Translations under genes and position numbers: made by a program
Notes under the pieces: model-generated
Told to the model about the DNA's origin: nothing
Database searches by the model: none
Seen by the model: the letters and a program-made list of their open reading frames with translations, nothing else
Part shown: positions 2,279 to 62,823 of the stretch, in pieces
Numbering within the stretch: position 1 is the stretch's first letter
Layout of the letters: the number at the start of each line of letters is the position of its first letter
IMG/VR virus record: IMGVR_UViG_3300040801_004034
Span: 1-64,000 of that record
Length of the DNA stretch: 64,000 nucleotides
Strand: one strand, 5' to 3'

Positions 2279-2296
2279 TCTTAAATATTATAAACA

Positions 2297-3028
2297 ATGG
2301 CGACAAACACAAAATTAAATGATACATTCTGTAATAGAATAATCTATAATACATCATTTTCCCCAAAAGATGATATGTATATTTCATTCAGACTTGCATT
2401 TGATTATAATGCACTGGTTGATGAACAGAACCAATTCCAAATTCTTTCTGAAGAAGGTCAGGTATTTTACTTAGAGAATTTCTTTGATGCACGAACAGGA
2501 TTCATGATCTTTCTAGTAGATGGTTCATACCCGATTGATGAAATCAATGGAGAACCTGGGATCGGTTATTGTCTAGCTGCTACATTATCCTCAGCATTCA
2601 CAGAAGTGTCGCGACATATTATGTCGCTTGCATTTGATATAAACGGATTGTATGGTCAAAACGATACTTTTAAAAATTCTAACTCGTCTGGTACTACAAC
2701 ACCTGTCCAAAAATCTGTGACGATACGTCAGAAGACATTACAATCAGATTATATGTTTGTAACAAGTAAATCAATTGATACATTTTTTGAAGATATTACA
2801 CAAACAGAAAGTACATATGTTGATGTCCGTATAAGATTTAAAGACTTTTTAAACACCATTTATGTTGATCTTAGGTTACCAGATGAACTGGATTACAAAA
2901 ATGTATTTAAAGAGCGTACAGGATTTAACATTAACATTCTACCTACGAGAGTTAAACCAGGTTTATCGTATTCAGGTAATCTACCATTGTTTATACGCGA
3001 CTTAACGTATAGCGGAACAACTATTTAA
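2297..3028 (+). CDS. putative virion protein, legume-lectin/ConA-like beta-sandwich
   Basis: GFMIFL…G.G…SLAFDING…VTIR…VRIRF…GLSYS pattern; TAAATA 9 nt upstream. Confidence 0.5.
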   Translation: MATNTKLNDTFCNRIIYNTSFSPKDDMYISFRLAFDYNALVDEQNQFQILSEEGQVFYLENFFDARTGFMIFLVDGSYPIDEINGEPGIGYCLAATLSSAFTEVSRHIMSLAFDINGLYGQNDTFKNSNSSGTTTPVQKSVTIRQKTLQSDYMFVTSKSIDTFFEDITQTESTYVDVRIRFKDFLNTIYVDLRLPDELDYKNVFKERTGFNINILPTRVKPGLSYSGNLPLFIRDLTYSGTTI

Positions 3029-3831
3029 CTTTCAAGCTGCTCGATTCTTTTTGTAAGAGCTTTTACCTGCTCGACAAGAATTGGTATAACTTGAATATAA
3101 TCAATACCAAGCATTCCGTTGCTGTTTGTACTAACTGCTTCAGGTAGTATTTTTTGGACTTCTTGTGCTATAAAACCATATGACTGTCCCCGTCTTACAG
3201 CTTTATCATTCCATTCAAATGAAACACCGCTCAAATTACTTATTATGCTATTTGGATCAGAGATTGTTTCGATATTATTTTTAAGTCTACTATCTGAGCT
3301 ATAAAAAGCAACAATATCATTACATGAAATTATTGTATCTTCAGCTAAGATCGTACCATCAACTGCAAAATTCGTTTTACCTGTTAATGATTGTATACTT
3401 ATTGTACTCGCAGTCGGTGCAGTAAATGTCAGAGTACCACTTGCAGGGGTAGTGGCAAAAGGATTCCATGCATTGGTCGATTTACTTACTGTATGCGACC
3501 CGATAGACAATCCAGTATTTTGAACTACTAATGAAGCTGATGTTACTGAACCTGCAACAGCTGCGTTTGACAACACATCAAGCGATAGCATTGTCGCTGT
3601 TTTTGAAAATGAAGCATTATCTGAAACGTTAAGTGTGCTACCAATACTTGTAGCACCGGTCGTATTAAATGTACCGCTTACTGTAGCAGAGTTCGTACTC
3701 AAACTAAGAGCTGACGGACACCCAAGACCACTTGTTATGGGTTTTAAACTACTATCAATACTTGCGTTATCATCTGTCTTAAGCAGACCGTCATATGTAT
3801 TGTTAATTTGTTTTCCTTCGAGTGTTGCCAT
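3025..3831 (-). CDS. tail fibre-like protein with C-terminal intramolecular chaperone (peptidase S74)
   Basis: SSDSRLKNNI…GVSFEW…GFIAQEVQKILPEAV…IDY…LVEQVKAL. Confidence 0.8.
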   Translation of the reverse strand: MATLEGKQINNTYDGLLKTDDNASIDSSLKPITSGLGCPSALSLSTNSATVSGTFNTTGATSIGSTLNVSDNASFSKTATMLSLDVLSNAAVAGSVTSASLVVQNTGLSIGSHTVSKSTNAWNPFATTPASGTLTFTAPTASTISIQSLTGKTNFAVDGTILAEDTIISCNDIVAFYSSDSRLKNNIETISDPNSIISNLSGVSFEWNDKAVRRGQSYGFIAQEVQKILPEAVSTNSNGMLGIDYIQVIPILVEQVKALTKRIEQLES

Positions 3832-4544
3832 TAGATTTGTTCTTTAAGTGTTATGATTTCATTGTTAAGACGTTTTACCTCTTCAATAAGAACTGGTATA
3901 ATTTTTATATAGTCAACAGCAAGATAGCCATTATCACGTTCATGTACAGCTTGCGGGAATACTTTCTGTAACTCCTGTGCCACTACACCAGCTCCTATTT
4001 GATCCACGTATTCTGATTTTTCATTCCATGTGTATATGTAACCGTTTATACCTTCGATAATTTTTTGACTCTCAATAGGTTGTATATTATTTTTAAGTCT
4101 ACCATCTGAAGTATAGAATGCAACAATATCATTACATGAACGTATAGGACCAGTAGCAGTAATACTACCTGATGTCACAATGTTACCAGTATTGGTTATA
4201 GATGAGTTTACTGTTAATGCATTCGCAATTGTTGTTGTTGTCCCAGCTAATGTCGTTGTACCACCTGTTATAGTAACATTAAGCCCGGTTGTAGTAAGAT
4301 TGCTAGAATTAACATTAAATCCGCTCCCTGTAGATAATGATGTACCGATAACAGCTCCATTTGTTGCATTAATATCACCTGTCACGCCTAGACCACCATT
4401 TGGTTGATATATTGTGACTGATGATGAATTACCAAAACCATCTGTCAATAAAATACCACCGCTTGGTATAACTGCGTTATCACAGGTTTTAATAAGCCCG
4501 TGATAACTTTCTTTAATTACTAAATCTGTTAATGCTGTTGCCAT
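3831..4544 (-). CDS. tail fibre-like protein with peptidase S74 chaperone (paralog of 3025..3831)
   Basis: TSDGRLKNNI…GVVAQELQKVFPQAV…VDY…LIEEVK; N-terminus similar to the neighbouring gene. Confidence 0.8.
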   Translation of the reverse strand: MATALTDLVIKESYHGLIKTCDNAVIPSGGILLTDGFGNSSSVTIYQPNGGLGVTGDINATNGAVIGTSLSTGSGFNVNSSNLTTTGLNVTITGGTTTLAGTTTTIANALTVNSSITNTGNIVTSGSITATGPIRSCNDIVAFYTSDGRLKNNIQPIESQKIIEGINGYIYTWNEKSEYVDQIGAGVVAQELQKVFPQAVHERDNGYLAVDYIKIIPVLIEEVKRLNNEIITLKEQI

Positions 4545-4563
4545 AATCTATATTTTTACTTAA

Positions 4564-6438
4564 TCAAAACGATATCTTTCGAGCCTTTGGTATGTTTTCA
4601 TTATTGTAACCTACATCAAGTAAAGCTATAACCTGTTTCTGGTAATTCAACATTGATTCAAACATTCTGTTAAACACTTTTGTTGATGTTGTTTCATTCA
4701 TACCAACGAATAAATTCTTCATAAAACTCTCTGTAACAATTTGTTTATCACCTGCTTTATCAATATATAACAAAGCAAAGAATTCAGGTATTACGTATCT
4801 TCCGTAACTCACATTTACCTTTTTGGATATATTTTGTGTTATCAAATTCATGTTATGTAACATTTTACCCATTGTTTTGTTCAACGTTATGTTATTGAAC
4901 ATATCATCTTGTATCAATACTTCATTTTTAGTGTAAAACGGTAGTGATTTTTCATTAAGAAGGGAGAACTGATCATCTGTTTCATGAAACTGGAGTATAC
5001 GGTTATTGAACATAAATGATATTCTATCGAAATCGTCACCAGTATTTAAAAGTGCCGATGCTTTAAATTGACCAGCTACAGCACTATCAGCTTCCCCCCA
5101 TGTCGGTAATGTATCTCGCCAATCTGTTTCAGTTGTACCCCATACTGTTTCAAGTGCAAAGTTACCACCAATTTTGAAACGAGCAATCAGAATGTTTTTT
5201 CGGTTGAGAAAAAATTTATATAACCCGCTATCTGTTTGAATATAATAAATGTTGCTGTTGTTTTCAGAAAATAGAATATCAACAATAGGTTCGCCTAGGA
5301 ATAAATTATTCTGGAATTTATATCTTTCAACTTCATCCATTGTATCGGTATCAAGCACAACAATAATATTCTGATCTGTTGCAACATATAAATAATTGTT
5401 ATTGATATTGTATGATATTGCTAATACTGTGTTAGTCGTAAAAAATGTCGTGTTTAAATACTTCGATCTATATAATAGTTCACTCGTGAATTTTTTAATC
5501 GATTTCTCACCGCTATCAAAAACAAACACACTACTGTTACCATACTCAATAAATGATATTTGTTCGAAATTCGTATCGTCAATTCCTGTATTACCAATTG
5601 TATCAATCAGTGAAACTGACCTGTCACCTGTTCGATCTTGCGATGTAATATTACCAATATAAATACTATAAAGTTGATTGTTTATTTCATCAGACACATA
5701 TAGTATATCTTTCCGATTTGTAGTAATGGATTTAATACTACTGAACTTGTTAGCATCAAAATTACCAACCCCTGATACAGGCGGGAATGCAGTAATGCTA
5801 TCAAAGTCAGAACCTGTTTCTGCTTGTAACGTTGCATATGATTTATCTGTAACAATAAAAAATATCGAACTTGATACAGACAATATAAATGTTAGAAAAT
5901 CATTATTTCTATTCTGTAATGTTTCAATTTTGATAGTATCTAATGCATCATCTGAAAAAGCTGGATCAAACGAACTTAATGCAAATTGACTACTTGATCC
6001 ATCAATTGCTGGCTCCAAATAGTTATTGTCTGTCCAAACAAGATCTCCATTTAACCCTGATACACCAAGTTGTGCTACAAAACCTACCGGTGCAAGAGGT
6101 GTTATAATCTGTGAATATCTGTATATGTCAATAAAGTTATCATAGAGATTTTCAAGTTTGGTGTTGATTGAGTTTTTATTTATAATTTCATTTGGTTGAA
6201 ATTTCACATCACCAATATCATATTTGAACGAAAACACATCTAACACAGAACGATCAAAGAAAGTTTCAGACAAATTTATCTCATTATCGATAACTTCCGT
6301 CGGTCTTAGAGATATTTCTTGATTGAATCTACCTTGATATGCATTATTATCAAGCACGTTGTAATATCCGACATAGTCACTGCCTGTAAGTACGAACTCA
6401 CCACCGGTTGTGTATTTGTATTTGTAAGGTAATGCCAT
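4564..6438 (-). CDS. virion structural protein with probable beta-propeller
   Basis: 624 aa; LYVSD/VFVFD/LYVAT strand repeats; lies in the baseplate cluster. Confidence 0.55.
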   Translation of the reverse strand: MALPYKYKYTTGGEFVLTGSDYVGYYNVLDNNAYQGRFNQEISLRPTEVIDNEINLSETFFDRSVLDVFSFKYDIGDVKFQPNEIINKNSINTKLENLYDNFIDIYRYSQIITPLAPVGFVAQLGVSGLNGDLVWTDNNYLEPAIDGSSSQFALSSFDPAFSDDALDTIKIETLQNRNNDFLTFILSVSSSIFFIVTDKSYATLQAETGSDFDSITAFPPVSGVGNFDANKFSSIKSITTNRKDILYVSDEINNQLYSIYIGNITSQDRTGDRSVSLIDTIGNTGIDDTNFEQISFIEYGNSSVFVFDSGEKSIKKFTSELLYRSKYLNTTFFTTNTVLAISYNINNNYLYVATDQNIIVVLDTDTMDEVERYKFQNNLFLGEPIVDILFSENNSNIYYIQTDSGLYKFFLNRKNILIARFKIGGNFALETVWGTTETDWRDTLPTWGEADSAVAGQFKASALLNTGDDFDRISFMFNNRILQFHETDDQFSLLNEKSLPFYTKNEVLIQDDMFNNITLNKTMGKMLHNMNLITQNISKKVNVSYGRYVIPEFFALLYIDKAGDKQIVTESFMKNLFVGMNETTSTKVFNRMFESMLNYQKQVIALLDVGYNNENIPKARKISF

Positions 6439-6457
6439 TTCTATATAGTTATTTAAA

Positions 6458-9400: not shown

Positions 9401-10120
9401 GTTATCAGTAAACTTGTTCTCGATTATGAAACCAGGTTGCGGTTCAATCTTTACAAATGCATTATTGATCGCTTGTATAGACGGTGATACACCATAAAGT
9501 CTTCCACTTAAAGGAGATACTATATTAAAGATGCTGCTTATTGTGTTTGTAAACGTTATAATATTACTATCTACATCATACACATAATTGAAAATGTTCT
9601 TACCATCTCTTTTATAAAGAGGATATTGTGATATCTGTACAAACTTAATTTCACCACCAGGTTCTGGTATTACCATTTCTTTTTCCACGAAGTCGAAGAT
9701 CTTAACCTTACATGTCAAATCATCTAAAAAGTCTATAACAACTGTCTCGTTTGCATTAATACTAGACGCAAGTATAACATCGACATCCGCATTCGTATTT
9801 TGCAAACTATAACGTAAAACATTTACTGCGGATGCAGGACTAAGACCAGCAAATGTTAGTGATGTAGATAAATCCTGATTGGCAATATTCTCATTTGTCT
9901 TTTCCTGATCGATAAAATCTTTCGGTTGTTGCTTACCAGTTAAATAGTTAACTGTATAATTTTTTGCAAGAACATCTTTAACATTACCGAGTATATTATA
10001 CACACTGATATTATTACCTTGAATAGTGCGCAACTGAATTTTCTTAAGGATCGAATCAGGATCACTTAATGTAAATTCAACAGGTAGAAGATCGGTATAA
10101 AGTTTCTTTAGTATTGCCAT
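6458..10120 (-). CDS. large virion structural protein (LamG-like/propeller, baseplate-associated)
   Basis: 1220 aa, beta-rich; C-terminal GSISDIALYDRTLS is LamG-like; TAAATA 7 nt upstream. Confidence 0.55.
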   Translation of the reverse strand: MAILKKLYTDLLPVEFTLSDPDSILKKIQLRTIQGNNISVYNILGNVKDVLAKNYTVNYLTGKQQPKDFIDQEKTNENIANQDLSTSLTFAGLSPASAVNVLRYSLQNTNADVDVILASSINANETVVIDFLDDLTCKVKIFDFVEKEMVIPEPGGEIKFVQISQYPLYKRDGKNIFNYVYDVDSNIITFTNTISSIFNIVSPLSGRLYGVSPSIQAINNAFVKIEPQPGFIIENKFTDNFVYYDTTNNVYTVSDETLIEQEYNFLVYYPYEALTPTTTGFETQMTFFNLRNHISNNAYVNPLLQTDHTQNQRLYSSIVNAGAREIVNEPLAFSYNFYTKEYIFKADKITKFVLPDTLYPFSHVNINDTNLVNCGAYGGQSPYFSDKVFKLLDNNKTKNEPYPNIDFDLLFQDNTYMLTQDNDVFVLQEQGIPDTIVENNGTVLCSWLNTEDETQPGVWYDRYYNPTSITFIDAISSNEIPQFETLSQAEQYLIQNSLQDELFFDVKSNMVFEPQGTYFYERIGNKYINTMIDSISSLLLKDSFDVKTIDDGAVSVKQNSLVFASSGYDSFDLDTLTNRNYSISFKLNSDNTKPFQSYQIFGNYYNDGYAVLDDFYFTPFIVIPDSTNLHFYNSKLEFIRTIQVPQVDTIIDVLFLDQRNDFVVYGELGSIKTFIKLGFNGEVIDVVSDSSSVYNTFIQGGYKSRVIHSYNAVTFATPQSALYTLNLNSFSLSSTPDPLSAAYTDKILFSSLSGFIPISTDVSITSLTGVNAASTPYFITDDVYAYHDTKLIYFSKTDGGFYQQSLSATEKDIYSIGSYDNKLFIQSYSRTGSLSTGQLDVFSSERDYLSSFNLSVSAVSGKHIDFIKDETGINALSFSTNSLNQLIIDRINLETGQLSTIQTSYSALPEFFENPVGFYNIEQKYKDYQNKLYFRLNIDNFVSAELITVLWNTATFQFSASPAELTAGDLDGFGYWDAQFSVESAGDQNGLELLLPLGEVETSSMFTFNFNINDGTIDVYKDTYKLGTVSFSPNLFSMNRIITPDIFFNVPTIKNDPVTKFVNNSHFYGDNGSISDIALYDRTLSDDMILFKHLAQTRIDDINFDIPSGTRNNIEQISNLYNYNIPGFKNNDLKIYIKRSNVDAATREQLKAYLTEQIRANSNIQIGNIVFEFIDDTIQTDGVSTIESDIIAANPVDDPNVVFYQDGIVIHNGDVVTYNP

Positions 10121-10130
10121 CTATTTTTAT

Positions 10131-10646
10131 TTAAGTGTTGGGTGAAATTGCTGTGATAAACATATTACTATTCGTGTCTGAGAAGTTAATTACAGGAGCA
10201 GGTTTGCCGTTTACATTTGTCACAGTTACATTATCGATAAAAACTGATCTGTCTATCTGATTGACATCTGCTGCAAAAACGGATAAAAACACAGTTGATG
10301 TAAACCCGTTAAGATACATAAAATCTATTCTCCCAATTGAAATCGTATCTGTATCGAACGGGTTGTATGTATGTTCAATAGTTTCGGGTATAGAATATTC
10401 GTATAAAAATTTTGAATTATTAAAACCTAAACTACTATTAAAATACTCTGTTTTTCCATCCCCATAATCGGCAAAAATTTTGTAAATAGTTGTGTTATTT
10501 GCGCCGCCATCATCGTTTGATACACCTGATAGCCCAAATATAAAGTTTGTAATACCTGAATATGAAATTGTTTTAACAGTTGACACACTACCACTTGAAG
10601 GGAAAGGAGCAGAAAGCTGCACAGTTTTTGTATCATCAAGTAACAT
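10131..10646 (-). CDS. PKD-like structural protein
   Basis: DYGDG…HTY motif; TAAATA 5 nt upstream. Confidence 0.55.
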   Translation of the reverse strand: MLLDDTKTVQLSAPFPSSGSVSTVKTISYSGITNFIFGLSGVSNDDGGANNTTIYKIFADYGDGKTEYFNSSLGFNNSKFLYEYSIPETIEHTYNPFDTDTISIGRIDFMYLNGFTSTVFLSVFAADVNQIDRSVFIDNVTVTNVNGKPAPVINFSDTNSNMFITAISPNT

Positions 10647-10660
10647 GACAATATTTAATC

Positions 10661-13045: not shown

Positions 13046-14545
13046 TTATGATGTTAAAAGTTGTGTTCGTGTTAGTATTATATTAAGCAGCAGCTCATCG
13101 ATGATACCACCATCATCAGCAAACTGAGATATTGATGAAAGATTACTTAATTGCGTACTCGGATTATTGAAATCTACAAATTCGTTTATAAATGTACCAT
13201 CTATAGTATCGTTAAACTCATAGAACTCATAAAAATCATCGATTCGCTCAGGTTGTTGAGCATCATCGTATGTCTGATGTACCAATCTACCACCATCTTC
13301 TAATGCAAGCACATCGATGTTGTCGTTCGTATATGATTGAAGCTGAAAATTATGCGTTGTGTTGAAAACATTTGGTAGAATAAGATTCCATCCCCAATAC
13401 TTTGAGTAAGCAGAAAGAGGAAATGCTCCTGTTCCTTCATCACTATAACGTAAGTCAAATGTCTGGGGATGAACAGGGTATATTACTTTGTATTTTTCAC
13501 TAAATTTTTCGTATGCAACAATAGGTTTACCTGACACACCTGTGTATAATGTTGTTGTTAGTATTGGAAGTTTATCTCCTAAATTTGTACCGAATGTACT
13601 GCTGTTCTCAAAACCTTTTGAGTCGAAATTATACTGATATGCATTTTCACTACTATGTATTTTGGAAAGATTTAGTGAACCTATATCACAAATACGTCTA
13701 ATTGATGGTGGTAGTGATGAATCGAGTTTGTTATATGTAACCCCGAGCATATCTAAGCTTGATTGAAACTGGTCAATGTTACTTGTTGATATATCAGTTT
13801 CATTCATTGAAAAGTTTGATATCTTTTCATATATTAATGTACCAAGATCCTCTGAACTCGTCTCACCGTCCCCTACAATTTGACCTAAAAATTTATCAAA
13901 GAAATTCGGTTTATCAATTAGTATATTTTGAAATATAAGATCTTTGTATGTCTGTTTCTGATCGTGATCTTCATTTATCTTACGAATGCTATACTTACCT
14001 TCAGCAGGGTAGATATTGAACACTGATGACTCACCTGAAACAGATGAGATAGGCGTTTGCATTGTTGCAATTAGTTTAACATTATCATAGACATTATCAA
14101 CAGTAAAATAACCTTTATACACACCTTGCTCGACGATGCCATCAAATTTATCTACAACATTAATCGGAATTTGATTGTTGTTTGCATCTACACATGAAAG
14201 TGATATACCGTATAAGTTTGTTGAGTCATCAGTTAAATAGAAATTAGGAGCAGTCTTTACAGGAAAATCATTTTCTGTTTTTCCTCGAATAACAAAATAT
14301 ATCTTCTGACCCTTGTAGTATATTTCATTAAGTTCGAATGATGTATCATTATAACCTATTCCATCCACACCGTTTGTTGAAAATACAAGCTTTTCAATCG
14401 GTAACTCATCATTAGTGATATCAAACGTTATCGTTTCAGAAATATTGTTTAATACACTTTTGGTAGACGGGTTAGTATAAAAGTTCGATTCAGTATCATC
14501 AAAACCCTTTAGATCAAAATTTCCATAGATGGTTCTTAAGCTCAT
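13046..14545 (-). CDS. virion structural protein (baseplate cluster)
   Basis: 499-aa ORF; TAAATA 7 nt upstream. Confidence 0.55.
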   Translation of the reverse strand: MSLRTIYGNFDLKGFDDTESNFYTNPSTKSVLNNISETITFDITNDELPIEKLVFSTNGVDGIGYNDTSFELNEIYYKGQKIYFVIRGKTENDFPVKTAPNFYLTDDSTNLYGISLSCVDANNNQIPINVVDKFDGIVEQGVYKGYFTVDNVYDNVKLIATMQTPISSVSGESSVFNIYPAEGKYSIRKINEDHDQKQTYKDLIFQNILIDKPNFFDKFLGQIVGDGETSSEDLGTLIYEKISNFSMNETDISTSNIDQFQSSLDMLGVTYNKLDSSLPPSIRRICDIGSLNLSKIHSSENAYQYNFDSKGFENSSTFGTNLGDKLPILTTTLYTGVSGKPIVAYEKFSEKYKVIYPVHPQTFDLRYSDEGTGAFPLSAYSKYWGWNLILPNVFNTTHNFQLQSYTNDNIDVLALEDGGRLVHQTYDDAQQPERIDDFYEFYEFNDTIDGTFINEFVDFNNPSTQLSNLSSISQFADDGGIIDELLLNIILTRTQLLTS

Positions 14546-14562
14546 TCACTATTATTTAAGGC

Positions 14563-15300: not shown

Positions 15301-17101
15301 CTTCTACTATAATATTATCAAGGATTGTATCGTTATATAAATATGGAAATTTATAGAAAGGCATTTTGGTATCAGCAGTTATGATATCAATATCCTGTGT
15401 TGGGTATATTGAATTGAATATAACTAGACTGATATTAGGTGTTTCAAGTGTACCTTTTCGTATTAACACATCCTTAACACCTGGTATAGTAAATAGCTGG
15501 TTTTTGAGTTCGAGAATACCAATTGTGCTTCCTAAACCAATGCTCTTAAAATATGATTTGAAGATATTATTTGCTTGTTGTTTGATTCGCTCACTACCAA
15601 GTCTACTATTTTGATCCTTCTTAATTATAAGATATGTTTCATCTTTGACATCTACTGTTAGCTCTTCAGTTGGTAGTTTAATACCTAATGTGACACCGAT
15701 ATAAACAGGGTCTTGGGGTACAAGCTCTACGTTCAACATTCTACGTCGTGACATCTCATCAAGTATAAGGTTCTTTTGAGATGCAGTAAGATAGTTTAAA
15801 TCGTTATTTGAACTTACGTTTGATACTTTCGGTACTAAGAACATATACACGTTGTTAATATTAGCAGTGGAAGCAAATTTAACTTGGTTGAATAAAAATC
15901 TTGGATCGTCGTTTGGTTTATCGAGACCGAGTTGATAGAAATAGTTTAAATACCCATCGATAAACTCATTATTGTTTACCACGCTAAATGATTCAAGGAT
16001 ATTTGAAAACTCCTTATTAAGGAATACCTCATAATCAGATTGTGTAACAAGTCTATTTTGTCTTTGAAACGTTTTAGGTGCGTTGACTCTTATTTCATCA
16101 ACTGTTTCAATTTCTTTTGCAGGTGTTGATTTAACAGTGTTAGCAAAATCAAGATTTAATAATTGTGTCGGTGTAATAAGTGTCAGATTCTGGTCAGCAT
16201 AAACATCGTTTGTTATACGTTCAAACAACGGTGTGGAGAACAATGTTAATTGATTATCATCCAGATCACCAACATCAATTTCACCAGATGCACCATCACT
16301 TTTCACATAATAAATATAAACTTGGTCACCTGCTTTAAGTCTATTACCAAACACACTATTACCAAATTTAAATTCATATAAACCGTTTTCATTTATTCGT
16401 TTTTCATATACTTTTGCAGATGGGGTTTGTAGAAACATATTGTCCACTTCTGTATATTGAGTAAACTTACCGGTATCGGTATCTCTCACGTAAATATCTA
16501 CACTTTCTTCATCAATATTAAACGGTTGTTGTGTTACTGTATCTTTCGTTGCAAGCGTAATTACTTCGAAATCTTCTCCGAATGCACCTTGTGGAGGATG
16601 CTCTATAAAGCTACCTTGATATAAAAGATTTTCATCTGATACTGACTTAAGCACTTGTTCACCAGCTGTTGTCTTAGTAAATGTTACATCATCGATGAAG
16701 CTGTATTTATTACCATTTACATCAAAACTTGCATAACGTGGTATTGTGTATGTACCAGCTGGCAGGTCCTCTGTTGCTGTTACTTTAAACGAAAGTAAAG
16801 ATGTTTGGTAACCAGTAGGTTTGTAATCGATCATCTTAACAATACGATTCATATTTTCATATATGCTCGTGTCTGTAAACATAGACTCGCTTGAGGTCTG
16901 ATTCAAATAGAAAAGTAGTGTATGGTATGAATATGCAATTATATCGATAATTGCTGATATATTACTTCCTTCGTAATTTTGATCGGTAAACGCTCCACCT
17001 TCATTAAGTCTTTGTTTGATAAGTTGCTTTAGAGAAAGTGCATCAAAACATGCATAAGCATTTTTTGGTAGCGTAAAATCTGTATTGTTGTTATCGGCCA
17101 T
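15287..17101 (-). CDS. gp6: baseplate wedge subunit gp6
   Basis: FTDQNYEGSNISAIIDIIAY, FKFGNSVFG, ETVDEIRVNAPKTFQRQNRLVTQSDY. Confidence 0.9.
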   Translation of the reverse strand: MADNNNTDFTLPKNAYACFDALSLKQLIKQRLNEGGAFTDQNYEGSNISAIIDIIAYSYHTLLFYLNQTSSESMFTDTSIYENMNRIVKMIDYKPTGYQTSLLSFKVTATEDLPAGTYTIPRYASFDVNGNKYSFIDDVTFTKTTAGEQVLKSVSDENLLYQGSFIEHPPQGAFGEDFEVITLATKDTVTQQPFNIDEESVDIYVRDTDTGKFTQYTEVDNMFLQTPSAKVYEKRINENGLYEFKFGNSVFGNRLKAGDQVYIYYVKSDGASGEIDVGDLDDNQLTLFSTPLFERITNDVYADQNLTLITPTQLLNLDFANTVKSTPAKEIETVDEIRVNAPKTFQRQNRLVTQSDYEVFLNKEFSNILESFSVVNNNEFIDGYLNYFYQLGLDKPNDDPRFLFNQVKFASTANINNVYMFLVPKVSNVSSNNDLNYLTASQKNLILDEMSRRRMLNVELVPQDPVYIGVTLGIKLPTEELTVDVKDETYLIIKKDQNSRLGSERIKQQANNIFKSYFKSIGLGSTIGILELKNQLFTIPGVKDVLIRKGTLETPNISLVIFNSIYPTQDIDIITADTKMPFYKFPYLYNDTILDNIIVEDAQS

Positions 17102-17114
17102 ATATTTTATTTAA

Positions 17115-17588: not shown

Positions 17589-17662
17589 TGTTAAATATTT
17601 ATGACAACAAACTATGTTAACTATTCGATTGTGTTTTTATACCGCTCTTTATAAATAATAGT

Positions 17663-18244: not shown

Positions 18245-18284
18245 TAATCGGTAAGTAGCATATGGGCTATGATTAAATAAAAAT

Positions 18285-48854: not shown

Positions 48855-49061
48855 GTCTTGTTTCTTATGAACACCAGAAACATCTTCATATGTACCATCT
48901 GCACGCTCGATCTTTACAATACCTTTATGGAAGAAGATACCAGATGATGGGCAGTAGTATTGAGCTTCTGTATAAACGTCTTGACCAACAGTCTTTGTAA
49001 CAATTTTTGGAGATGTAATTACACCTGATGGAGAGCTGATTCTTTTTGGAGTGATAAACAT
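48852..49061 (-). CDS. small hypothetical late protein
   Basis: TAAATA 8 nt upstream. Confidence 0.6.
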   Translation of the reverse strand: MFITPKRISSPSGVITSPKIVTKTVGQDVYTEAQYYCPSSGIFFHKGIVKIERADGTYEDVSGVHKKQD

Positions 49062-49080
49062 TATACAATTATTTATGCAT

Positions 49081-53518: not shown

Positions 53519-53813
53519 TATCATGCATCATAAAAAACCTATTAATATACGTGTTAAGTGCATCTGCATCACTTGTATTCTTAGCATACATTACTGGAGG
53601 AATTGGTTCACCATCAAACCCATATCCGATGATTATGAAACTCTTCATAAACTCACTACAAGTAGAAACCATTGCTTCTATTTCATCTTGAGATTGTGTA
53701 CGCTCACGTTTTGCATCTTGCATCATGAGAACAACATCCTTTAAAATATTTTTAAGCTCTTGTTCGTCTATCTTTGGCTTATTTTCATTATTTGGTTGTT
53801 TTTGTTCATCCAT
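53508..53813 (-). CDS. hypothetical protein
   Basis: Start placed at MDEQ, 10 nt after TATAAATA. Confidence 0.6.
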   Translation of the reverse strand: MDEQKQPNNENKPKIDEQELKNILKDVVLMMQDAKRERTQSQDEIEAMVSTCSEFMKSFIIIGYGFDGEPIPPVMYAKNTSDADALNTYINRFFMMHDMDM

Positions 53814-53853
53814 CGTATAATAGTATTTATACAATACTAAAAATTATTTGACT

Positions 53854-54211: not shown

Positions 54212-54943
54212 CTATTTAATTAGGGTCGTTACGATGTAAGTCAACACTGTTTCACCTTTTGTAAGTGTACAGATCAATATACCTGTGTCACTATTCACAT
54301 CGATTTTAACATGTTTTGTATTCTGATAGCTTAACAATCTGAATACCTCAAAATCAACAACGATCGGCTCGATCGGGGATCCTGTAAATGATTCAGCAAG
54401 TTTGCAAGTAAAATTATCACTATTATGTTTTGTTTTATCACCTAACTCACCACAAACATGATCATCTTCAGTATAGAAGTAGAGTTTATTAGTGTTTGTC
54501 GTAAATGAGCTTGCTTTAAACAATAGAGCAATATCTTTTTCAATACATGTAAATGTACTTGGGAAGTCAAGCTGCTTTGCTTTCTCTGGGTTCAGATTTG
54601 GTTGTTTGATGATACCGTCTTCAAGTAAATGATATTTGAATTTAAATTCCCCTTTCTTGTACGAAATATTATTACTACCTATTGTAAGTTCAATTTCATT
54701 CTCAGGTATAATATCAAGCACCCTAATAAGCTTTTTGATATCAGGTACGTTTAGTTTAGATGGTACAAAATCAACAACAGTTACAGGGTATACACCGTTA
54801 CATACAAGCGTTACATTATTTGTTGCAATGATACAACTTATCAGGTCTTCTTTAACTTCGAAAATACCCAGTTCATTAATATTCGAAACAGGTTCGAGGA
54901 AGTTTTTGATGAAATCGTTTTTGTTTTTGATTTGCAGTTTCAT
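54212..54943 (-). CDS. gp45: sliding clamp gp45 (PCNA-like)
   Basis: 243 aa two-domain alpha/beta pattern; near gp32. Confidence 0.7.
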   Translation of the reverse strand: MKLQIKNKNDFIKNFLEPVSNINELGIFEVKEDLISCIIATNNVTLVCNGVYPVTVVDFVPSKLNVPDIKKLIRVLDIIPENEIELTIGSNNISYKKGEFKFKYHLLEDGIIKQPNLNPEKAKQLDFPSTFTCIEKDIALLFKASSFTTNTNKLYFYTEDDHVCGELGDKTKHNSDNFTCKLAESFTGSPIEPIVVDFEVFRLLSYQNTKHVKIDVNSDTGILICTLTKGETVLTYIVTTLIK

Positions 54944-55386: not shown

Positions 55387-56255
55387 TATGAAAGATCAAT
55401 ACCATCAAGAAGCTCTTTCATCTTTGCGTCTTCTTCTTCATTAGAAGCTGCACTTGATTCATCAGGAGCTTTTTCTGATCGTGTGTTTGTTTCAGCATGC
55501 TCAGAAGGCTTGGTTGATTGATTCACTTCACTTGTATCAACCTGTGCCGGTGCACCTTCACAAATGATGTGTTCACGAACCATGTTTTGCAACTCTTCAG
55601 TTGTTTTAACCGGTTGTACACTTGTGAGATCAAATACACTACCAAGAATTTCTTTTTGTTTATCTTTTGTCATACCATCAATTTCTGATGGTAATGTAAA
55701 CTTCGATGAAACATATGTTGGGTAATCACCTTGTTGTTCAACTTTGATACGAAGATTAACACCTTCAGGTCCTAGATCAAATACACGACGACCGAGATCT
55801 TCTGCATCTTCACCACTAATAGCATCAACAACAATCTTATGAATTTGCTTACCATATCGAAGAATTTTTACCTTTCCGTTATTATCAGGATTTTTAGGAT
55901 CATCAATAACATAAACGTTCACAAGCCATTTTTCAGACCAACGAAGCTTTTCAGCTTTATTACGTTGTTCAGGTGTACCTGCTTTATATTTAAATTTGAT
56001 TTCACTAATTGGATCACGTTCACCGAATGTAACCGGGCTTAAAGCTGAAACATATTGTCCAGTTGCAAGACTATTCCATCCATTCATGTAATAATGGAAG
56101 AATGTCTTTTTTGGTTCTTTTGAGAATGGTAAAAGACGTACTAGGTATGTATTACCTGGTTCTGTCTTCAGAAAATCACCATAAGATGATGCTTTGTTAT
56201 CGTCTGCAAGAGCTGATTGAATGCTCTGGAATATATCGTTTGTTACGTTGCTCAT
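55386..56255 (-). CDS. gp32: single-stranded DNA-binding protein gp32
   Basis: VRLLP, NVYVIDDPKNPDNNGKVKILRYGKQI, YVSSKF, acidic tail. Confidence 0.9.
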   Translation of the reverse strand: MSNVTNDIFQSIQSALADDNKASSYGDFLKTEPGNTYLVRLLPFSKEPKKTFFHYYMNGWNSLATGQYVSALSPVTFGERDPISEIKFKYKAGTPEQRNKAEKLRWSEKWLVNVYVIDDPKNPDNNGKVKILRYGKQIHKIVVDAISGEDAEDLGRRVFDLGPEGVNLRIKVEQQGDYPTYVSSKFTLPSEIDGMTKDKQKEILGSVFDLTSVQPVKTTEELQNMVREHIICEGAPAQVDTSEVNQSTKPSEHAETNTRSEKAPDESSAASNEEEDAKMKELLDGIDLS

Positions 56256-56261
56256 AAATCT

Positions 56262-56289
56262 ATTATAAATACTAGGTCGCTGAAATCAA
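56262..56289 (-). promoter_or_regulatory. early promoter TTGATT-N16-TATAAT, 6 nt before ATG
   Basis: Read directly from the sequence. Confidence 0.75.
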
Positions 56290-57178: not shown

Positions 57179-58056
57179 TATAAAAGTTTGAGTGTTTTTG
57201 TTAGGTTCATCACGTTTTCATTTAATGCTACACCGGCAGCACATTCGTGACCACCACCTTGTCCTAATTTTTCCGCAAGCTCTCCCATATGTAATTTACA
57301 TTCGTTTGTGCTTCTTAGATATGCTTTCTTCATTTTAGGATTGATTATAAGTATAAAGTCGTATCCGTATTTTTCAAGCATTCTACCTGCTATTTCATTA
57401 GGCCATTTTTCTGCACAGCAGCTTAACATCTTAAACTGTTTATCACCAATAGGTATTTGTGTACCATACATTTTTGTCTGTACTATTATCTGATTGATTT
57501 CATTATGAATAATATGAAGCGCATTTTTATGAAATTTATTAAAGCCGACAAAACCTGTACCGAAATCATCAATAAATTTACCAAGTTTATCACCAGTATA
57601 CCCCCAGTAAATAAAATCTAAATCTTTACTAAACGGAAACTTAAGTGTGTAACTATCGTAATCATCGATTAGTGCAAATAGTGTTACCATTGGTTTTGAA
57701 AGCTTATCTTTAATTTTAAAAACATCACAAATTAGCTTTGTACAAGACGTTTCCATCTTCACAACTTGTTTAGCTATTTTCCAAACATGACTATTCTCAA
57801 CATGTTGTTCATGATGATCAATAACTACCACGTTTGGGTAGTCGCAAATATATGCATAATCATAAATCGGTAAATCACAAATAAACACTTTTGAATATTG
57901 TGAAAAATCAAATTGATCAAAATCCTTCTTGAAACTTTTAACAGTGGTAACCTTATAAACAACTTTATATGTATCTGCTGGCATAGCTTCACGGATTGCA
58001 AGGAATGACCCAGCTCCATCTAAATCTGCATCGACTATGACTAAAATCTTTTTCAT
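57178..58056 (-). CDS. DHH/DHHA1 phosphoesterase
   Basis: DADLDG, ICD, IDHH, DDYD, GGGHECAAG. Confidence 0.9.
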   Translation of the reverse strand: MKKILVIVDADLDGAGSFLAIREAMPADTYKVVYKVTTVKSFKKDFDQFDFSQYSKVFICDLPIYDYAYICDYPNVVVIDHHEQHVENSHVWKIAKQVVKMETSCTKLICDVFKIKDKLSKPMVTLFALIDDYDSYTLKFPFSKDLDFIYWGYTGDKLGKFIDDFGTGFVGFNKFHKNALHIIHNEINQIIVQTKMYGTQIPIGDKQFKMLSCCAEKWPNEIAGRMLEKYGYDFILIINPKMKKAYLRSTNECKLHMGELAEKLGQGGGHECAAGVALNENVMNLTKTLKLL

Positions 58057-58090
58057 TGTAAATAGTTATTTAATAATAGGTTCCTTCAGT

Positions 58091-59965: not shown

Positions 59966-61030
59966 TCTGTTAATCTGAGATGCTGTGATTATAGGGCAAC
60001 TAAAAATGTATGACAAGGCTCGAACCTTTTCAGACACACCTTTAATACGTTCATAAAGCTGACTATTTTCATTACCTTTAATCAAATTCAAATAGTCAAG
60101 AACGATTGCATCAAATTTAAACCCTGAACTTTGTACTGATTTTAAATAACCCTGCAATCCTTCTACAGTAACAGTGTTAGGTGGAAATTCTTTTACAACA
60201 ATTGACCCTTGTTTTGGTTGACCTTCTTGCTCATTCATCATGTGCTTGAGTGTTACTGTTTGAGACTTAAGTTCTCGTACAGGTATTTTCGTTAATCCTG
60301 ATACGAGTCGTCTACCATACATCATTTCAGCCATTTCAAATGATATCAGTAGTACGTTTTTACCGGATGCTGCTATATTACATGCAACATTACCAAGAAC
60401 AATACTCTTACCAATATTAGTCTCACCGACGAACATGTATAATGAACGACCATTTTGTAAAAAGCCGCCATCTAAACTATTATTCAACCAATCCCACCCA
60501 GTAGTAATTGTCGGTTCATCGACATTCAAATCATCGATTAAACGATCAATATCTTTAAAGAGATCAAGACCAATATCAGTAGTAAGGTCAACATTACAAC
60601 TCCTCTCGAAACTATCTAAAATATAAGCTGTATCAATATTACCTTGTGAAAAATCCTCTGCAACACTCAACATTGTATTGTAAATTGCACGTTCTTTAAT
60701 AAAACGCTCAGTATTACTTACCAATTCATCTTTATCAAGAACACGATCAAAGTCTTTTACTTCCTTGATTATGTTTTTGAAGTTTTCTTTGAGAGTATCG
60801 TTAACCAAGAACGATTTAATCTCTGTTATGGTCGGTATTTTCTGTCGACGTTCATAGAACGTTTTAATAACAGTAAAAACATTTTTGATATCTTTGTTCT
60901 TAAAATGACTTGGGTCTACAAAAGGTATTACTTGTGTTAAGTATTGCTCATCGAACAGGCATTGATGTATTAAAATCTTCTCAAAAAAATCTGTATCTAG
61001 TCTTTGTTTTTCCATTTGTTTAGAAACCAT
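59696..61030 (-). CDS. gp41: replicative helicase gp41 (DnaB-like), N-terminal part followed by an 89-aa split-intein N fragment
   Basis: TTGW, GETNIGKS, SFEMAE, KEFPP, LDYLNLI, TASQINR|CLDINT…ICSGKHMF. Confidence 0.93.
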   Translation of the reverse strand: MVSKQMEKQRLDTDFFEKILIHQCLFDEQYLTQVIPFVDPSHFKNKDIKNVFTVIKTFYERRQKIPTITEIKSFLVNDTLKENFKNIIKEVKDFDRVLDKDELVSNTERFIKERAIYNTMLSVAEDFSQGNIDTAYILDSFERSCNVDLTTDIGLDLFKDIDRLIDDLNVDEPTITTGWDWLNNSLDGGFLQNGRSLYMFVGETNIGKSIVLGNVACNIAASGKNVLLISFEMAEMMYGRRLVSGLTKIPVRELKSQTVTLKHMMNEQEGQPKQGSIVVKEFPPNTVTVEGLQGYLKSVQSSGFKFDAIVLDYLNLIKGNENSQLYERIKGVSEKVRALSYIFSCPIITASQINRCLDINTVVKTPNGNKRIVDLKIGDKILGSKKYVDVRYVYPVETQKCYKIKLKSGKEIICSGKHMFPVSNQLVKSINTGLEVGDKLFTEK

Positions 61031-61665
61031 CTCTGTCCATTATAGAATGTTTCATCTGGTTTATCAAGGCCTGGTGATTGATGAATGACTGGTATGTCAA
61101 CAACCCCAACAGATACTTTGTGTTCGTTACATGTCAGACATATGTCAAGGTCATAAAAATGAAACTTACTCGGGCAGGTTTCATCAAATCGAACTTCATC
61201 CGGTAACTGTTTAATATTGATACATATGAATAGACCATCTATCAATAGCGCTCTTGATGGTAACGGGCCAAATGAAGTATACATGTATTGATCTTCAGAA
61301 CCATGAGCAACACAACCTCTATGATCTTTACGATCCGACATTAAATGCCATAGTGCTGGTTCTTTCAAATTACAACCTCTTGAACCAGCTAAACCGTTGA
61401 CTGTATAAACGCAGTTGTTTTGGATACGATCCCATAAATCGGAGCAGTTAATATACACATCATCGTGTATCAAAACTAAGAAATCGTATTTGTAATTTTT
61501 TGCTTCTTGAATACACTTGTTATAGTATGATTGTAAAGGTTCTGAATTATTTTCTTTGAACTTAAAATGTAAAAAATATTGATCTAATAGTTTTTTGCTG
61601 CTTTTAAACAGAGCTGTATCTTCTTTTTTACCTTTTGTAGCGCTACATACTAAAATATTACTCAT
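60997..61665 (-). CDS. GT-A fold glycosyltransferase-like protein
   Basis: YN…LVLIHDDV, GLAG, IDGLF, FDE…FHFYDLD.C, H.S.G; start placed at MSNILV. Confidence 0.75.
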   Translation of the reverse strand: MSNILVCSATKGKKEDTALFKSSKKLLDQYFLHFKFKENNSEPLQSYYNKCIQEAKNYKYDFLVLIHDDVYINCSDLWDRIQNNCVYTVNGLAGSRGCNLKEPALWHLMSDRKDHRGCVAHGSEDQYMYTSFGPLPSRALLIDGLFICINIKQLPDEVRFDETCPSKFHFYDLDICLTCNEHKVSVGVVDIPVIHQSPGLDKPDETFYNGQRWFLNKWKNKD

Positions 61666-61990
61666 ATTCTTTCCTATCGTCCAGTTCTGGTTTATTTTTT
61701 TCGGTATACATTGCAGCCATGATATTCCAAATAGCTGCTGCAGCATGGTCTTCATCAGTATGGTTCTGAAACCACTTTCTCAAATGTCTATCAGCACTAT
61801 CATAGTAAACACTCAATGGCATACCGAGTTTCCAGTTGTTTGGTGAATAACGCTCTGCACCTTTTGTAAAATGTAATGCTACTCTTTCTAACTCTTCTTG
61901 CGGTACTAATGACATCCGCGGCTTACCAACCCCTGTATCACGGTGAGCTCCAGTGTCGAATTTTCGGTTATTTTCATTCCTATCTTCCAT
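61658..61990 (-). CDS. dATP/dGTP diphosphohydrolase-like protein (DUF5664)
   Basis: GAHRD…GKPRMSLVP…GAERY…NW.LG…SADRHL…EDHAAA..WN. Confidence 0.8.
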   Translation of the reverse strand: MEDRNENNRKFDTGAHRDTGVGKPRMSLVPQEELERVALHFTKGAERYSPNNWKLGMPLSVYYDSADRHLRKWFQNHTDEDHAAAAIWNIMAAMYTEKNKPELDDRKEYE

Positions 61991-62007
61991 TATGATTAAG
62001 TATTGTT

Positions 62008-62823
62008 ATGTTTATCGGATTCATTTATATAGTATATTATATAGGTAATAATAGTATAATCAAGGACCACAGTTATATAGGTTCAAGATTATACAACAAA
62101 GGTTGGGAGACGTACATGGGATCATCTGTATCAAATAACGAGAAGTGTGTTATTTGGCGAAATGAACTTAAAACCAATCCAGAGAATTTTAAACGTGTGA
62201 TTTTAAAAAATGTGACTGATAGTGAGAACATTTACACCGAAGAACATTTAATGATGGAAAAATTTGGTGTTGATTTAAAATCCAATAGTAAGTGGATTAA
62301 TAGATCTTTCCCGATATTAAATGGATTATCCGACAATTTCTTAGATGATGATCAGTTACAAGCTATAAAAGAAAAACGTAAACAAACATGCATACAAAAA
62401 TATGGTGTTGATCACCCTTCTAAAACAATCATAAATAGAAAAAAATGTAAAGCGCGTTTCAACACTGATGATGTCCGTAAAAGACGAGGTAAAAGTATTT
62501 CGAAAGCGTGGAAAAACAAAACAAAAATTGAACTAGAACAAATTACACAAAAACGTACAAAAAAATTACAGAAATATCTCAGTAACCAAAAAAATTATTC
62601 AAAACACTGTGAAATGAGAAAACGTACAGCATTAAAATGGTGGGTCACAGTTGAATGTATTGAAACTAATAAAACATTTTCATTTTTTAAAAACGATAGT
62701 TTATATCATATACAAGTAGGTCCTGGACAAATAATGAAACGTATAAGGAAAGTCACAATGTCACCTTTTAAAAGTAAAGATGGTATGACATACAGGTTGA
62801 TATCATGTATTAAAAAACACTAA
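62008..62823 (+). mobile_element. GIY-YIG (Seg-like) free-standing homing endonuclease
   Basis: GFIY…YIGSR…YMGSS…FKRVIL…E…WIN; KYGVDHP; TAAGTA 5 nt upstream; antisense to its neighbours. Confidence 0.8.

Follow-up and report, generated by a model that had tools for sequence, protein, structure and literature searches.

Bacteriophage T4 transcribes its late genes from promoters that consist of a lone A/T-rich -10-type box, TATAAATA, with no -35 element and with an A/T-rich segment downstream (PMC2988020, PMC7892883), which are served by the gp55 sigma factor, the gp33 co-activator and the gp45 sliding clamp. In T4 this box lies 21-29 nt or more before the ATG, and the mRNAs carry Shine-Dalgarno (SD) leaders. 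A different arrangement has been described for the large virulent Thermus thermophilus phage phiYS40, which makes most of its middle and late transcripts without a leader (PMC3594737, a secondary source for Sevostyanova et al. 2007), although this phage is not T4-like, appears to lack a gp55-type late sigma factor and infects a host phylum in which leaderless genes are themselves common. In cellular genomes (Deinococcus-Thermus, Actinobacteria), a TA-rich -10 signal about 10 bp upstream of the start codon is the accepted sequence signature of leaderless genes (PMC3160421, PMC12340547). Here we describe a 221-kb, 35% G+C metagenome-assembled jumbo phage of the T4 superfamily in which the leaderless design appears to be combined with a T4-type late system. 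Its putative late-promoter box, TAAATA (and, elsewhere in the genome, two TATAAT-type promoter classes), sits at the distance that would put the transcription start on the A of the ATG, suggesting that most of its transcription units probably give messages with no leader or one of only a few bases, something T4 itself does not do.

We focused on a 64,000-nt stretch (the window; positions 1 to 64,000 of IMG/VR record IMGVR_UViG_3300040801_004034), which represents the virion-gene end of this genome. An initial annotation of the window had listed 27 start codons preceded at 5-7 nt by TAA(A/G)TA. We were able to confirm every one of these: each is the first base of an ATG (or, in one case, a GTG) that opens a long ORF, and each has [A/T]TAA[A/G]TA ending exactly 5, 6 or 7 nt upstream on the expected strand. 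Nine further genes in the window were found to carry the motif at 8-12 nt (Table 1).

Table 1. Promoter-like boxes, terminator-like hairpins and a candidate clamp gene in the 64,000-nt window.
Position	Strand	Feature	Spacer (nt)	Start codon	Downstream ORF or gene	Remarks
2282..2299	+	TAAATA	9	ATG 2297	243-aa ORF	
4542..4562	-	TAAGTA	12	ATG 4544	237-aa ORF	
6436..6455	-	TAAATA	11	ATG 6438	624-aa ORF	
10118..10133	-	TAAATA	7	ATG 10120	1220-aa ORF	the TAA is also the stop of the upstream gene
10644..10657	-	TAAATA	5	ATG 10646	171-aa ORF	
14543..14558	-	TAAATA	7	ATG 14545	499-aa ORF	
17099..17113	-	TAAATA	6	ATG 17101	gp6-like baseplate wedge, 604 aa	
17586..17601	-	TAAATA	7	ATG 17588	baseplate wedge subunit, 157 aa	divergent from 17663
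17652..17665	+	TATAAATA	5	ATG 17663	193-aa ORF	divergent 74-nt region
18274..18287	+	TAAATA	5	ATG 18285	tail-fibre-like, 401 aa	
19524..19541	+	TAAATA	9	ATG 19539	153-aa ORF	
22968..22981	-	TAAATA	5	ATG 22970	endonuclease ORF	splits the gp44 clamp-loader gene
23623..23637	-	TATAAT	6	ATG 23625	N-terminal piece of gp44 clamp loader	second promoter class; TTGAAC upstream
23665..23678	+	TAAATA	5	ATG 23676	78-aa ORF	ORF ends at 23912
24640..24654	-	TATAAT	6	ATG 24642	dUTPase	second promoter class; TTGATA upstream
24686..24700	+	TAAATA	6	ATG 24698	161-aa ORF	
29257..29272	-	TAAATA	7	ATG 29259	434-aa ORF	
30968..30981	-	TATAAATA	5	ATG 30970	566-aa ORF	
31711..31724	-	TAAATA	5	ATG 31713	240-aa ORF	
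33337..33352	-	TAAATA	7	ATG 33339	tail-tube-like, 282 aa	
33363..33383	-	terminator-like hairpin plus T-run				stem ends 23 nt before ATG 33339; coordinates derived from this distance
33967..33982	-	TAAATA	7	ATG 33969	tail tube, 184 aa	
34721..34734	-	TAAATA	5	ATG 34723	182-aa ORF	
34780..34811	-	strong intrinsic-terminator-like hairpin (14 pairs plus T-run)				just after the sheath gene; stem ends 56 nt before ATG 34723
37217..37232	-	TATAAATA	7	ATG 37219	tail sheath, 797 aa	motif and spacing kept in 21 relatives
37264..37277	+	TAAATA	5	ATG 37275	homing endonuclease, 259 aa	divergent 55-nt region
39856..39873	-	TAAATA	9	ATG 39858	401-aa ORF	
40719..40733	-	TAAGTA	6	ATG 40721	175-aa ORF	
41560..41583	.	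overlapping palindromic boxes: TATAAATA (+) and TAAATA (-)	5 (+); 11 (-)	ATG 41581 (+); ATG 41562 (-)		18-nt divergent intergenic region
42460..42511	+	terminator-like hairpin (42460-42489), its T-run running into TATAAATA (42496-42503)	5	GTG 42509		only 19 nt between stem and start codon
45362..45375	-	TAAATA	5	ATG 45364	117-aa ORF	divergent from 45440
45429..45442	+	TAAATA	5	ATG 45440	138-aa ORF	
45930..45943	+	TAAGTA	5	ATG 45941	endonuclease / DNA-binding protein, 374 aa	
47063..47077	+	TAAATA	6	ATG 47075	154-aa ORF	
49059..49075	-	TAAATA	8	ATG 49061	69-aa ORF	
53811..53829	-	TATAAATA	10	ATG 53813	101-aa ORF	
54212..54943	-	gp45-like sliding clamp candidate (243 aa)				phrog_223, E=5.5e-8; in T4 the clamp activates late promoters
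56253..56267	-	TATAAT	6	ATG 56255	gp32-like ssDNA-binding protein	second promoter class; TTGATT upstream
58054..58072	-	TAAATA	10	ATG 58056	DHH phosphoesterase-like, 292 aa	
59658..59672	-	TAAATA	6	ATG 59660	396-aa ORF	next to the intein-bearing DnaB gene
61028..61044	-	TATAAT	8	ATG 61030	DnaB-like helicase	
61997..62010	+	TAAGTA	5	ATG 62008	271-aa ORF	

Since the genome is 65% A+T, and since the hexamer occurs 303 times on both strands, mostly away from gene starts, we first asked whether the pattern could be an artefact of composition or of gene junctions. TAAATA-N5-ATG was found 14 times in the window, against 3.37±1.76 in 100 dinucleotide-preserving shuffles, none of which reached 14. Genome-wide, there were 47 occurrences at N5 against 3-16 (about 8) at every other spacing from 0 to 29, and 45 occurrences of WTAAATA-N5-ATG against 4 for the reversed control. 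In only 8 of 87 cases was the TAA of the motif the stop codon of the upstream gene, and 31 of the 87 sites lie in divergent regions with no upstream stop codon. Furthermore, T4 has the same G+C content and shows no such peak; its TATAAATA-to-ATG distances cluster at 21-29 nt, and its upstream pentamers are SD sequences. An artefactual origin is therefore refuted by these statistics.

The genome also codes for parts of the machinery expected of a T4-type late system. We identified a gp55 homologue at 77787-78275(-) of G000 (the phage genome), with E=2.6e-9 against T4 gp55 and E=1.2e-22 for phrog_234, located next to homologues of gp46/gp47, which in T4 lie upstream of gene 55 on the same strand. 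A gp45-like clamp and a gp44 clamp loader are likewise encoded, while no other sigma factor and no phage RNA polymerase were found. It is noticeable, however, that gp33 was not detected and that the gp55 homologue lacks an obvious T4-like C-terminal clamp-binding motif, so that clamp-coupled activation is unproven. The aligned sites give the logo gAW-TAAATA-WTwnT|ATG, without a -35 element; relative to the T4 box, the first two positions are relaxed (WTAAATA) and TAAGTA is tolerated.

We next sought to determine which genes carry the box. TAAATA precedes genes for baseplate wedge, tail fibre, tail tube, sheath, portal, a gp15-like protein, the head-tail adaptor and homing endonucleases, whereas TATAAT precedes those for DNA polymerase, UvsX, gp32, DnaB, helicase, clamp loader, dUTPase and gp55 itself. 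This partition is not perfect, as the ribonucleotide reductase gene carries the late-type box, and late timing is inferred from gene functions only. Genes without a box mostly overlap the gene before them or lie within 5 nt of it (108 of 170 motif-less genes with a same-strand neighbour), and would be translated by coupling.

Several features suggest that initiation takes place at or next to the start codon, as the initial annotation had inferred. The modal spacer of 5 nt matches the placement of the T4 late box, if this is taken to be -13..-6. In addition, a T|A dinucleotide resembling an initiation site is conserved at motif+5/+6 whatever the distance to the ATG: at 39 sites with a spacer of 6 or more, motif+6 is A in 30 (p=1.3e-8) and motif+5 is a pyrimidine in 27, a pattern replicated in the relative G001 (p=0.004). 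T4's own TATAAATA sites show a similar bias, with a pyrimidine at +5 in 21 of 32 and a purine at +6 in 26 of 32. Terminator hairpins end 19-56 nt before motif-bearing starts (three in one tally, eight in another, with only the promoter motif in between), and divergent starts lie only 18 nt apart.

Taken together, we read [A/T]TAAATA as a late promoter used by host RNA polymerase carrying the gp55-like sigma factor, a reading to which we assign a probability of roughly 0.75, with the position of +1 and leaderless translation inferred from sequence rather than from mapped 5' ends. Initiation would fall on an A six bases after the box, preceded by a T. At the commonest sites (spacer 5) this is the A of the ATG, so that the message would have no leader and would have to be translated by ribosomes recognising a 5'-terminal AUG, while spacers of 6-12 more likely give leaders of 1-7 nt than strictly leaderless RNAs. 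One N5 site in the window starts with GTG, which is probably used poorly by leaderless translation in E. coli. The only RNA data, Logan contigs of three small metatranscriptomes from the source sample, cover just the major capsid gene, which lacks the motif and has a leader of at least 15-74 nt.

The initial annotation had also raised the possibility that the motif is a non-SD translation-initiation signal. It could be, for example, an A/U-rich enhancer in the style of ribosomal protein S1 binding or of the Bacteroidetes 'Kozak-like' signals, lying inside longer 5' UTRs or polycistronic RNAs that start at promoters further upstream. In line with this, no SD is used anywhere in the genome, the upstream regions and spacers are A/T-rich, and the capsid gene is clearly translated from an A-rich leader. 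Many boxes follow a same-strand gene by only 6-40 nt, so read-through RNAs carrying the box internally probably exist as well. The host is unknown, but a relative's sheath contig sits in a Flavobacteriaceae genome bin, a weak hint of a host family in which A-rich non-SD translation signals are normal and most mRNAs have leaders; in F. johnsoniae SD is absent and A-rich positions tune initiation (PMC6847099). This alternative is not excluded, but we consider it unlikely: a general translation signal should not partition by gene function, the TAAATA and TATAAT boxes peak at different spacers (5 and 6) that match promoter geometry, the conserved T|A is anchored to the box and not to the ATG, the adjacent terminators and 18-nt divergent regions leave no room for another promoter, and a gp55 homologue is present.

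It also remains conceivable, though more doubtful still, that the box is a genuine gp55-type promoter from which initiation is not at the ATG, for instance because this polymerase and sigma start 8-10 nt after the box, inside the ORF, so that the conserved ATG is not the real start codon, or because most protein comes from read-through transcripts. The distance from box to +1 rests on T4 and on the T|A signature, and intrinsic terminators are few (13 against 7.4 expected in 19 kb), so nested read-through transcripts are likely. However, the ATG at fixed distance is the first ATG of the ORF at 39 of 45 N5 sites, nothing but selection on that ATG explains a peak at a single spacer, and A at motif+6 is conserved when the ATG is further away.

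The ATG is also conserved in relatives: those with 60-66% sheath identity keep TAAATA at N5 or N7 while the sequence further upstream diverges. Across five related contigs we found 54, 24, 17, 16 and 9 matches to TAAATA-N5-ATG, against 4, 2, 2, 1 and 3 for the reversed control. In relatives, back-to-back TAAATA-N5-ATG matches on opposite strands are directly adjacent or 1 nt apart.

The arrangement is not restricted to late genes. TATAAT-N6-ATG occurs 59 times in the genome against about 10, and a spacer of 6 is the canonical distance from a sigma-70 -10 hexamer to +1, the geometry seen in cellular leaderless genes. These sites fall into two further classes: TTGAnn-N16/17-TATAAT-N6-ATG, which precedes replication genes, and GGAAC-N5-TATAAT-N6-ATG, which precedes small early-looking ORFs. 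The leaderless design therefore looks genome-wide in this phage lineage, with three promoter classes, one of them putatively read by a phage sigma factor and another with an unusual GGAAC element at -22..-18 in place of a -35, for which GGAAC-N17-ATG was found 49 times against about 4.

The 221,292-bp IMG/VR virus record of which the window forms the first part (G000) was assembled from a microbial-mat metagenome, is rated 100% complete by CheckV and has a G+C content of 35.5%. Within the window, we identified genes for a T4-type contractile tail, including the sheath, tube proteins, gp6-like and other baseplate wedge subunits and a tail-fibre-like protein, together with replication genes coding for a DnaB-like helicase, a gp32-like ssDNA-binding protein, a gp44 clamp loader, a gp45-like clamp and a dUTPase. 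The rest of the genome holds a T4-type DNA polymerase, UvsX, gp46/gp47 homologues, the major capsid protein, the portal and 39 tRNA genes. No close cultured relative was found; the closest cultured phages are T4-like coliphage relatives and cyanomyoviruses, with sheath and capsid proteins only 32-35% identical, and this phage is therefore a deep, uncultured branch of the T4 superfamily.

To test the initial annotation, which had noted a T4-like late box a few nucleotides before many start codons, we read the 30 nt preceding each of its 27 listed starts. In every case [A/T]TAA[A/G]TA ends exactly 5, 6 or 7 nt before an ATG (in one case a GTG) that opens a long ORF on the stated strand. TAAATA-N5-ATG occurs 14 times in the window, as compared with 3.37±1.76 in dinucleotide-preserving shuffles, none of 100 of which reaches 14. 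Genome-wide, there are 47 matches at spacer 5, then 15 and 16 at spacers 6 and 7, against about 8 elsewhere, while a reversed-pattern control gives 4 against 45. At 39 of 45 N5 sites the ATG is the first ATG of its ORF, and 43 of 45 N5 sites start with ATG. Since only 8 of 87 boxes reuse the stop codon of the upstream gene, and 31 lie in divergent intergenic regions, the pattern is not a junction artefact. In addition, no Shine-Dalgarno signal exists upstream of the roughly 360 ORFs, where there is no G enrichment from -15 to -5, and an unbiased pentamer scan that recovers GAGGA and AGGAG in T4 recovers only TAAAT, AAATA, TATAA and ATAAT here.

Several independent lines of evidence indicate that the box is a promoter. 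First, the genome encodes a homologue of the gp55 late sigma factor, which shares 38% identity with T4 gp55 over residues 44-130 (E=2.6e-9), matches phrog_234 (E=1.2e-22), is conserved at 67% in the 185-kb relative G001, and lies next to gp46/gp47 homologues, which in T4 lie upstream of gene 55 on the same strand. A gp45-family clamp candidate was missed by a direct protein search and by a six-frame profile search, but was found by scanning the ORF itself (phrog_223, E=5.5e-8), and a gp44 homologue is present, although split in two pieces. No phmmer hit to gp62 was found among the predicted proteins, in the absence of a search with its profile, phrog_225. Nor did we find gp33, a small and fast-evolving protein, using phmmer with the T4 protein, a six-frame search with phrog_254, or a candidate chosen by its position upstream of the gp32 gene, which shows no similarity. 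The gp55 homologue also has no obvious T4-like clamp-binding tail. Searches for extra sigma factors, ribosomal protein S21, WhiB, and T7-type and multisubunit RNA polymerases found none, although the T7-type search had no positive control.

Second, the aligned N5 sites read g-A-W-TAAATA-W-T-w-n-T|ATG, with nothing conserved from -45 to -15. This is the anatomy of a T4 late promoter, in which a lone TATAAATA-like box at the -10 position is followed by an A/T-rich segment, without a -35 element (PMC2988020, PMC7892883). Third, the box partitions by function. Every annotated virion gene examined except the capsid gene carries it, including sheath, tube, wedge, fibre, portal, adaptor and gp15-like genes, as do four homing-endonuclease genes, whereas those for DNA polymerase, UvsX, gp32, DnaB, a second helicase, the clamp loader, dUTPase and gp55 itself do not. 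The ribonucleotide reductase gene, which carries a late-type box, is a further exception, and late timing is inferred from gene functions only. The box is dense at 2-66, 79-135 and 152-166 kb and nearly absent from the block of small minus-strand ORFs at 166-220 kb.

Analysis of the replication genes also revealed a pattern that the initial annotation had not reported. TATAAT-N6-ATG occurs 59 times genome-wide, against about 10 at any other spacing, and 45 of 49 TATAAT-N6 sites start with ATG. These sites split into two groups. Replication and nucleotide-metabolism genes are preceded by a complete sigma-70-type promoter, TTGAnn-N16/17-TATAAT-N6-ATG, whereas about 50 small ORFs at 133-215 kb are preceded by GGAAC[C/A]-N5-TATAAT-N6-ATG, with GGAAC-N17-ATG occurring 49 times against about 4. 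The GGAAC element at -22..-18 matches no promoter element known to us. Six nucleotides is the canonical distance from a sigma-70 -10 hexamer to +1, and five is the distance for the T4 late octamer if this lies, as appears to be the case, at -13..-6, in agreement with the "about one helical turn" of PMC2988020. Thus, two different boxes each peak at a single spacer, differing by one nucleotide as promoter geometry predicts. This is hard to reconcile with the alternative raised in the initial annotation, that of a non-SD translation-initiation signal, and a full -35/-10 promoter is not a translation element. Such a signal would also be expected to serve genes of all temporal and functional classes, but the three mutually exclusive motif classes partition by gene function and genome region, with only 3 ORFs carrying both a TAA[AG]TA and a TATAAT box before candidate starts.

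We then asked where transcription might begin. At the 39 late-type sites with a spacer of 6-12 nt, the base six positions after the box is A in 30 cases (p=1.3e-8) and the base before it is a pyrimidine in 27, so that the conserved T|A is anchored to the box and not to the ATG. G001 shows the A preference more weakly (20 of 34 at motif+6, p=0.004), and T4's own 32 TATAAATA sites have a pyrimidine at +5 in 21 and a purine at +6 in 26. We therefore place +1 at motif+6, an inference drawn from sequence. At spacer 5 this is the A of the ATG, which would give a strictly leaderless message, while at spacers 6-12 the leader would be 1-7 nt. Taken with the evidence that follows, we put the probability of this mechanism at about 0.75. 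One N5 site in the window starts with GTG, which fits it less well.

The genomic context supports this placement. A strong terminator hairpin after the sheath gene ends 56 nt before the next start codon, with nothing promoter-like in between except the box; a second runs straight into TATAAATA-N5-GTG, leaving 19 nt from stem to start codon; and a third ends 23 nt before a tube-gene start. Elsewhere, five GGAAC-class starts have a hairpin ending 32-34 nt upstream. In the absence of mapped transcription starts, these contexts argue against the box lying within a transcribed leader at the eight sites. Two divergent gene pairs are only 18 nt apart, with the boxes inside that space. In relatives, TAAATA-N5-ATG matches on opposite strands lie directly adjacent or 1 nt apart at homologous sites in four related contigs (G001, G002, G004 and G005), plus a second site in G001, so that the intergenic region holds only the two boxes and their spacers. 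Furthermore, genes without any box mostly overlap the preceding gene or lie within 5 nt of it (108 of 170), as expected for translational coupling within units headed by a leaderless cistron. An in-frame internal TAAATA-N5-ATG was also noted inside a 285-aa ORF, which may be an internal promoter giving a shorter protein, or chance.

Positions of features in the window, in the complete record (G000) and in related contigs
Feature	Sequence	Position	Strand
Tail sheath gene	window	34826-37219	-
Terminator hairpin after the sheath gene	window	34780-34811	
Hairpin running into TATAAATA-N5-GTG	window	42460-42489	
GTG start of that N5 site	window	42509	
Tube-gene start with hairpin 23 nt upstream	window	33339	
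18-nt divergent intergenic region	window	41563-41580	
Internal TAAATA-N5-ATG	window	41888-41901	+
285-aa ORF containing it	window	41581-42438	
Starts with TTGAnn-N16/17-TATAAT-N6-ATG	window	23625, 24642 and 56255	
Both TATAAT classes, outside the window	G000	60-215 kb	
gp45-like clamp candidate	window	54212-54943	-
gp33 candidate chosen by position	window	56876-57178	-
gp55 homologue	G000	77787-78275	-
gp44 clamp-loader gene, interrupted	window	21311-23625	-
gp44 pieces	window	22975-23625 and 21311-22045	
Endonuclease ORF between the gp44 pieces	window	22026-22970	
DnaB-like helicase region	window	58470-61030	-
DnaB-like helicase ORF	window	59696-61030	
ORF following the helicase	window	58470-59660	
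Homing-endonuclease-like ORF	window	37275-38054	+
Homing-endonuclease-like ORF	window	45941-47065	+
Homing-endonuclease-like ORF	G000	66436-67107	-
tRNA array and tmRNA	G000	125,549-143,167	
tmRNA	G000	140670-141018	
tRNA with anticodon CTA	G000	138150-138226	
Region of metatranscriptome contigs on the major capsid gene	G000	149,810-151,416 (also numbered L015:15810-17416)	
QueC-like and glutamine-amidotransferase-like genes; sugar-nucleotide cluster	G000	64156-67932 and 84170-95972	
Back-to-back TAAATA-N5-ATG units	G001	84600-84628 and 119369-119396	
Back-to-back TAAATA-N5-ATG units	G002	49823-49850	
Back-to-back TAAATA-N5-ATG units	G004	32270-32297	
Back-to-back TAAATA-N5-ATG units	G005	12500-12527	

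To determine the extent to which this arrangement is conserved, we examined relatives. Twenty-one IMG/VR contigs with 59-66% sheath identity keep TAAATA at spacer 5 or 7 before the sheath gene, although the sequence further upstream has diverged, and five larger related contigs show 54, 24, 17, 16 and 9 TAAATA-N5-ATG matches against 4, 2, 2, 1 and 3 for the control. G001 also encodes the gp55, clamp and gp32 homologues. There, the TATAAT-N6 class is not clearly enriched (21 against about 12), while GGAAC-N17-ATG is modestly enriched (10 against about 2). By contrast, T4, which has the same G+C content, shows no peak at spacer 5 (10 against 5), and its TATAAATA-to-ATG distances cluster at 21-29 nt.

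Searches for sequencing runs of the source mat found only DNA runs and three small metatranscriptomes, the latter as assembled contigs. When compared with 5.5 kb around the capsid gene (G000 148,500-154,000), these RNA contigs cover only the major capsid gene, and its motif-bearing neighbours have zero depth. The phage therefore appears to be transcribed in the sample, although DNA carried into the RNA libraries is not formally excluded. The capsid gene, which lacks the box, has a leader: two runs end at the same base, 15 nt upstream of its ATG, between GG and an A-run, which could be a processing site or an assembly break, and one reaches 74 nt upstream.

The single hint as to the host, which is unknown, is a 2637-bp contig from a relative (DLPY01000007.1), which carries a sheath gene 63% identical to that of the window and is binned into Flavobacteriaceae bacterium UBA7446. 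We treat this as weak, because TTGAnn/TATAAT promoters do not appear to be what Bacteroidota sigma-A reads. F. johnsoniae lacks SD but has mostly leadered mRNAs (PMC6847099), and if that were the host phylum, the translation-signal alternative would gain some weight.

By box, sigma factor and gene class the promoter belongs with T4 late promoters, from which it differs in being fused to the start codon; T4 late messages carry ordinary Shine-Dalgarno leaders. Phage-wide leaderless middle and late mRNAs are described for Thermus phage phiYS40 (PMC3594737), and a -10 box adjacent to the ORF is the recognised signature of leaderless genes in Deinococcus-Thermus and Actinobacteria (PMC12340547, PMC3160421), whereas phiKZ and AR9, the jumbo phages with mapped transcription starts, have no leaderless transcripts (PMC8244752, PMC5312081). 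In the literature searched we found no paper linking leaderless messages to T4-like phages, the co-occurrences examined all being reference-list citations. If the inferred +1 is correct, the arrangement would show that the gp55 system can be coupled to leaderless translation, and would extend phage-wide leaderless expression beyond the Thermus phages. It also gives a simple sequence rule (box plus 5 or 6 nt plus ATG) for calling gene starts and transcription units in this uncultured lineage, where standard gene finders that expect a ribosome-binding site may misplace starts.

More speculatively, and in our view improbably, a widespread aquatic lineage of T4-superfamily jumbo phages (relatives with 30-35% G+C occur in many metagenomes) might have rebuilt its whole expression programme around leaderless messages, with three promoter classes, including the gp55-dependent late class, fused to start codons. 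This would let the phage separate its own translation from that of an SD-less, normally leadered host (possibly Flavobacteriaceae), for instance by shifting initiation towards 70S ribosomes and 5'-AUG recognition, helped by its 39 tRNAs and its tmRNA. The tRNA genes form an array together with the tmRNA, which is of the one-piece type (Rfam RF00023 at 85 bits, tag GENQLMAA). One tRNA has anticodon CTA, which reads UAG, but we found no sign of stop-codon recoding, since TAG ends 65 predicted genes and the long ORFs do not grow when TAG is read as sense.

Several homing-endonuclease-like ORFs each carry a late-type box at spacer 5. The two pieces of the gp44 clamp-loader gene, which is uninterrupted in G001, are separated by an endonuclease ORF with its own TAAATA-N5-ATG, which could be an intron, an intein or a free-standing homing-endonuclease insertion. 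The DnaB-like helicase ORF ends in an intein-splicing-like segment (Pfam Intein_splicing, residues 386-439) and the next ORF starts with a late-type box; the helicase gene is probably interrupted by an intein or homing element. Finally, outside the window, a QueC-like gene and a glutamine-amidotransferase-like gene suggest possible 7-deazaguanine DNA modification, and a separate cluster holds sugar-nucleotide genes (epimerases, cytidylyltransferase, a family-8 glycosyltransferase) and a radical-SAM/SPASM gene.
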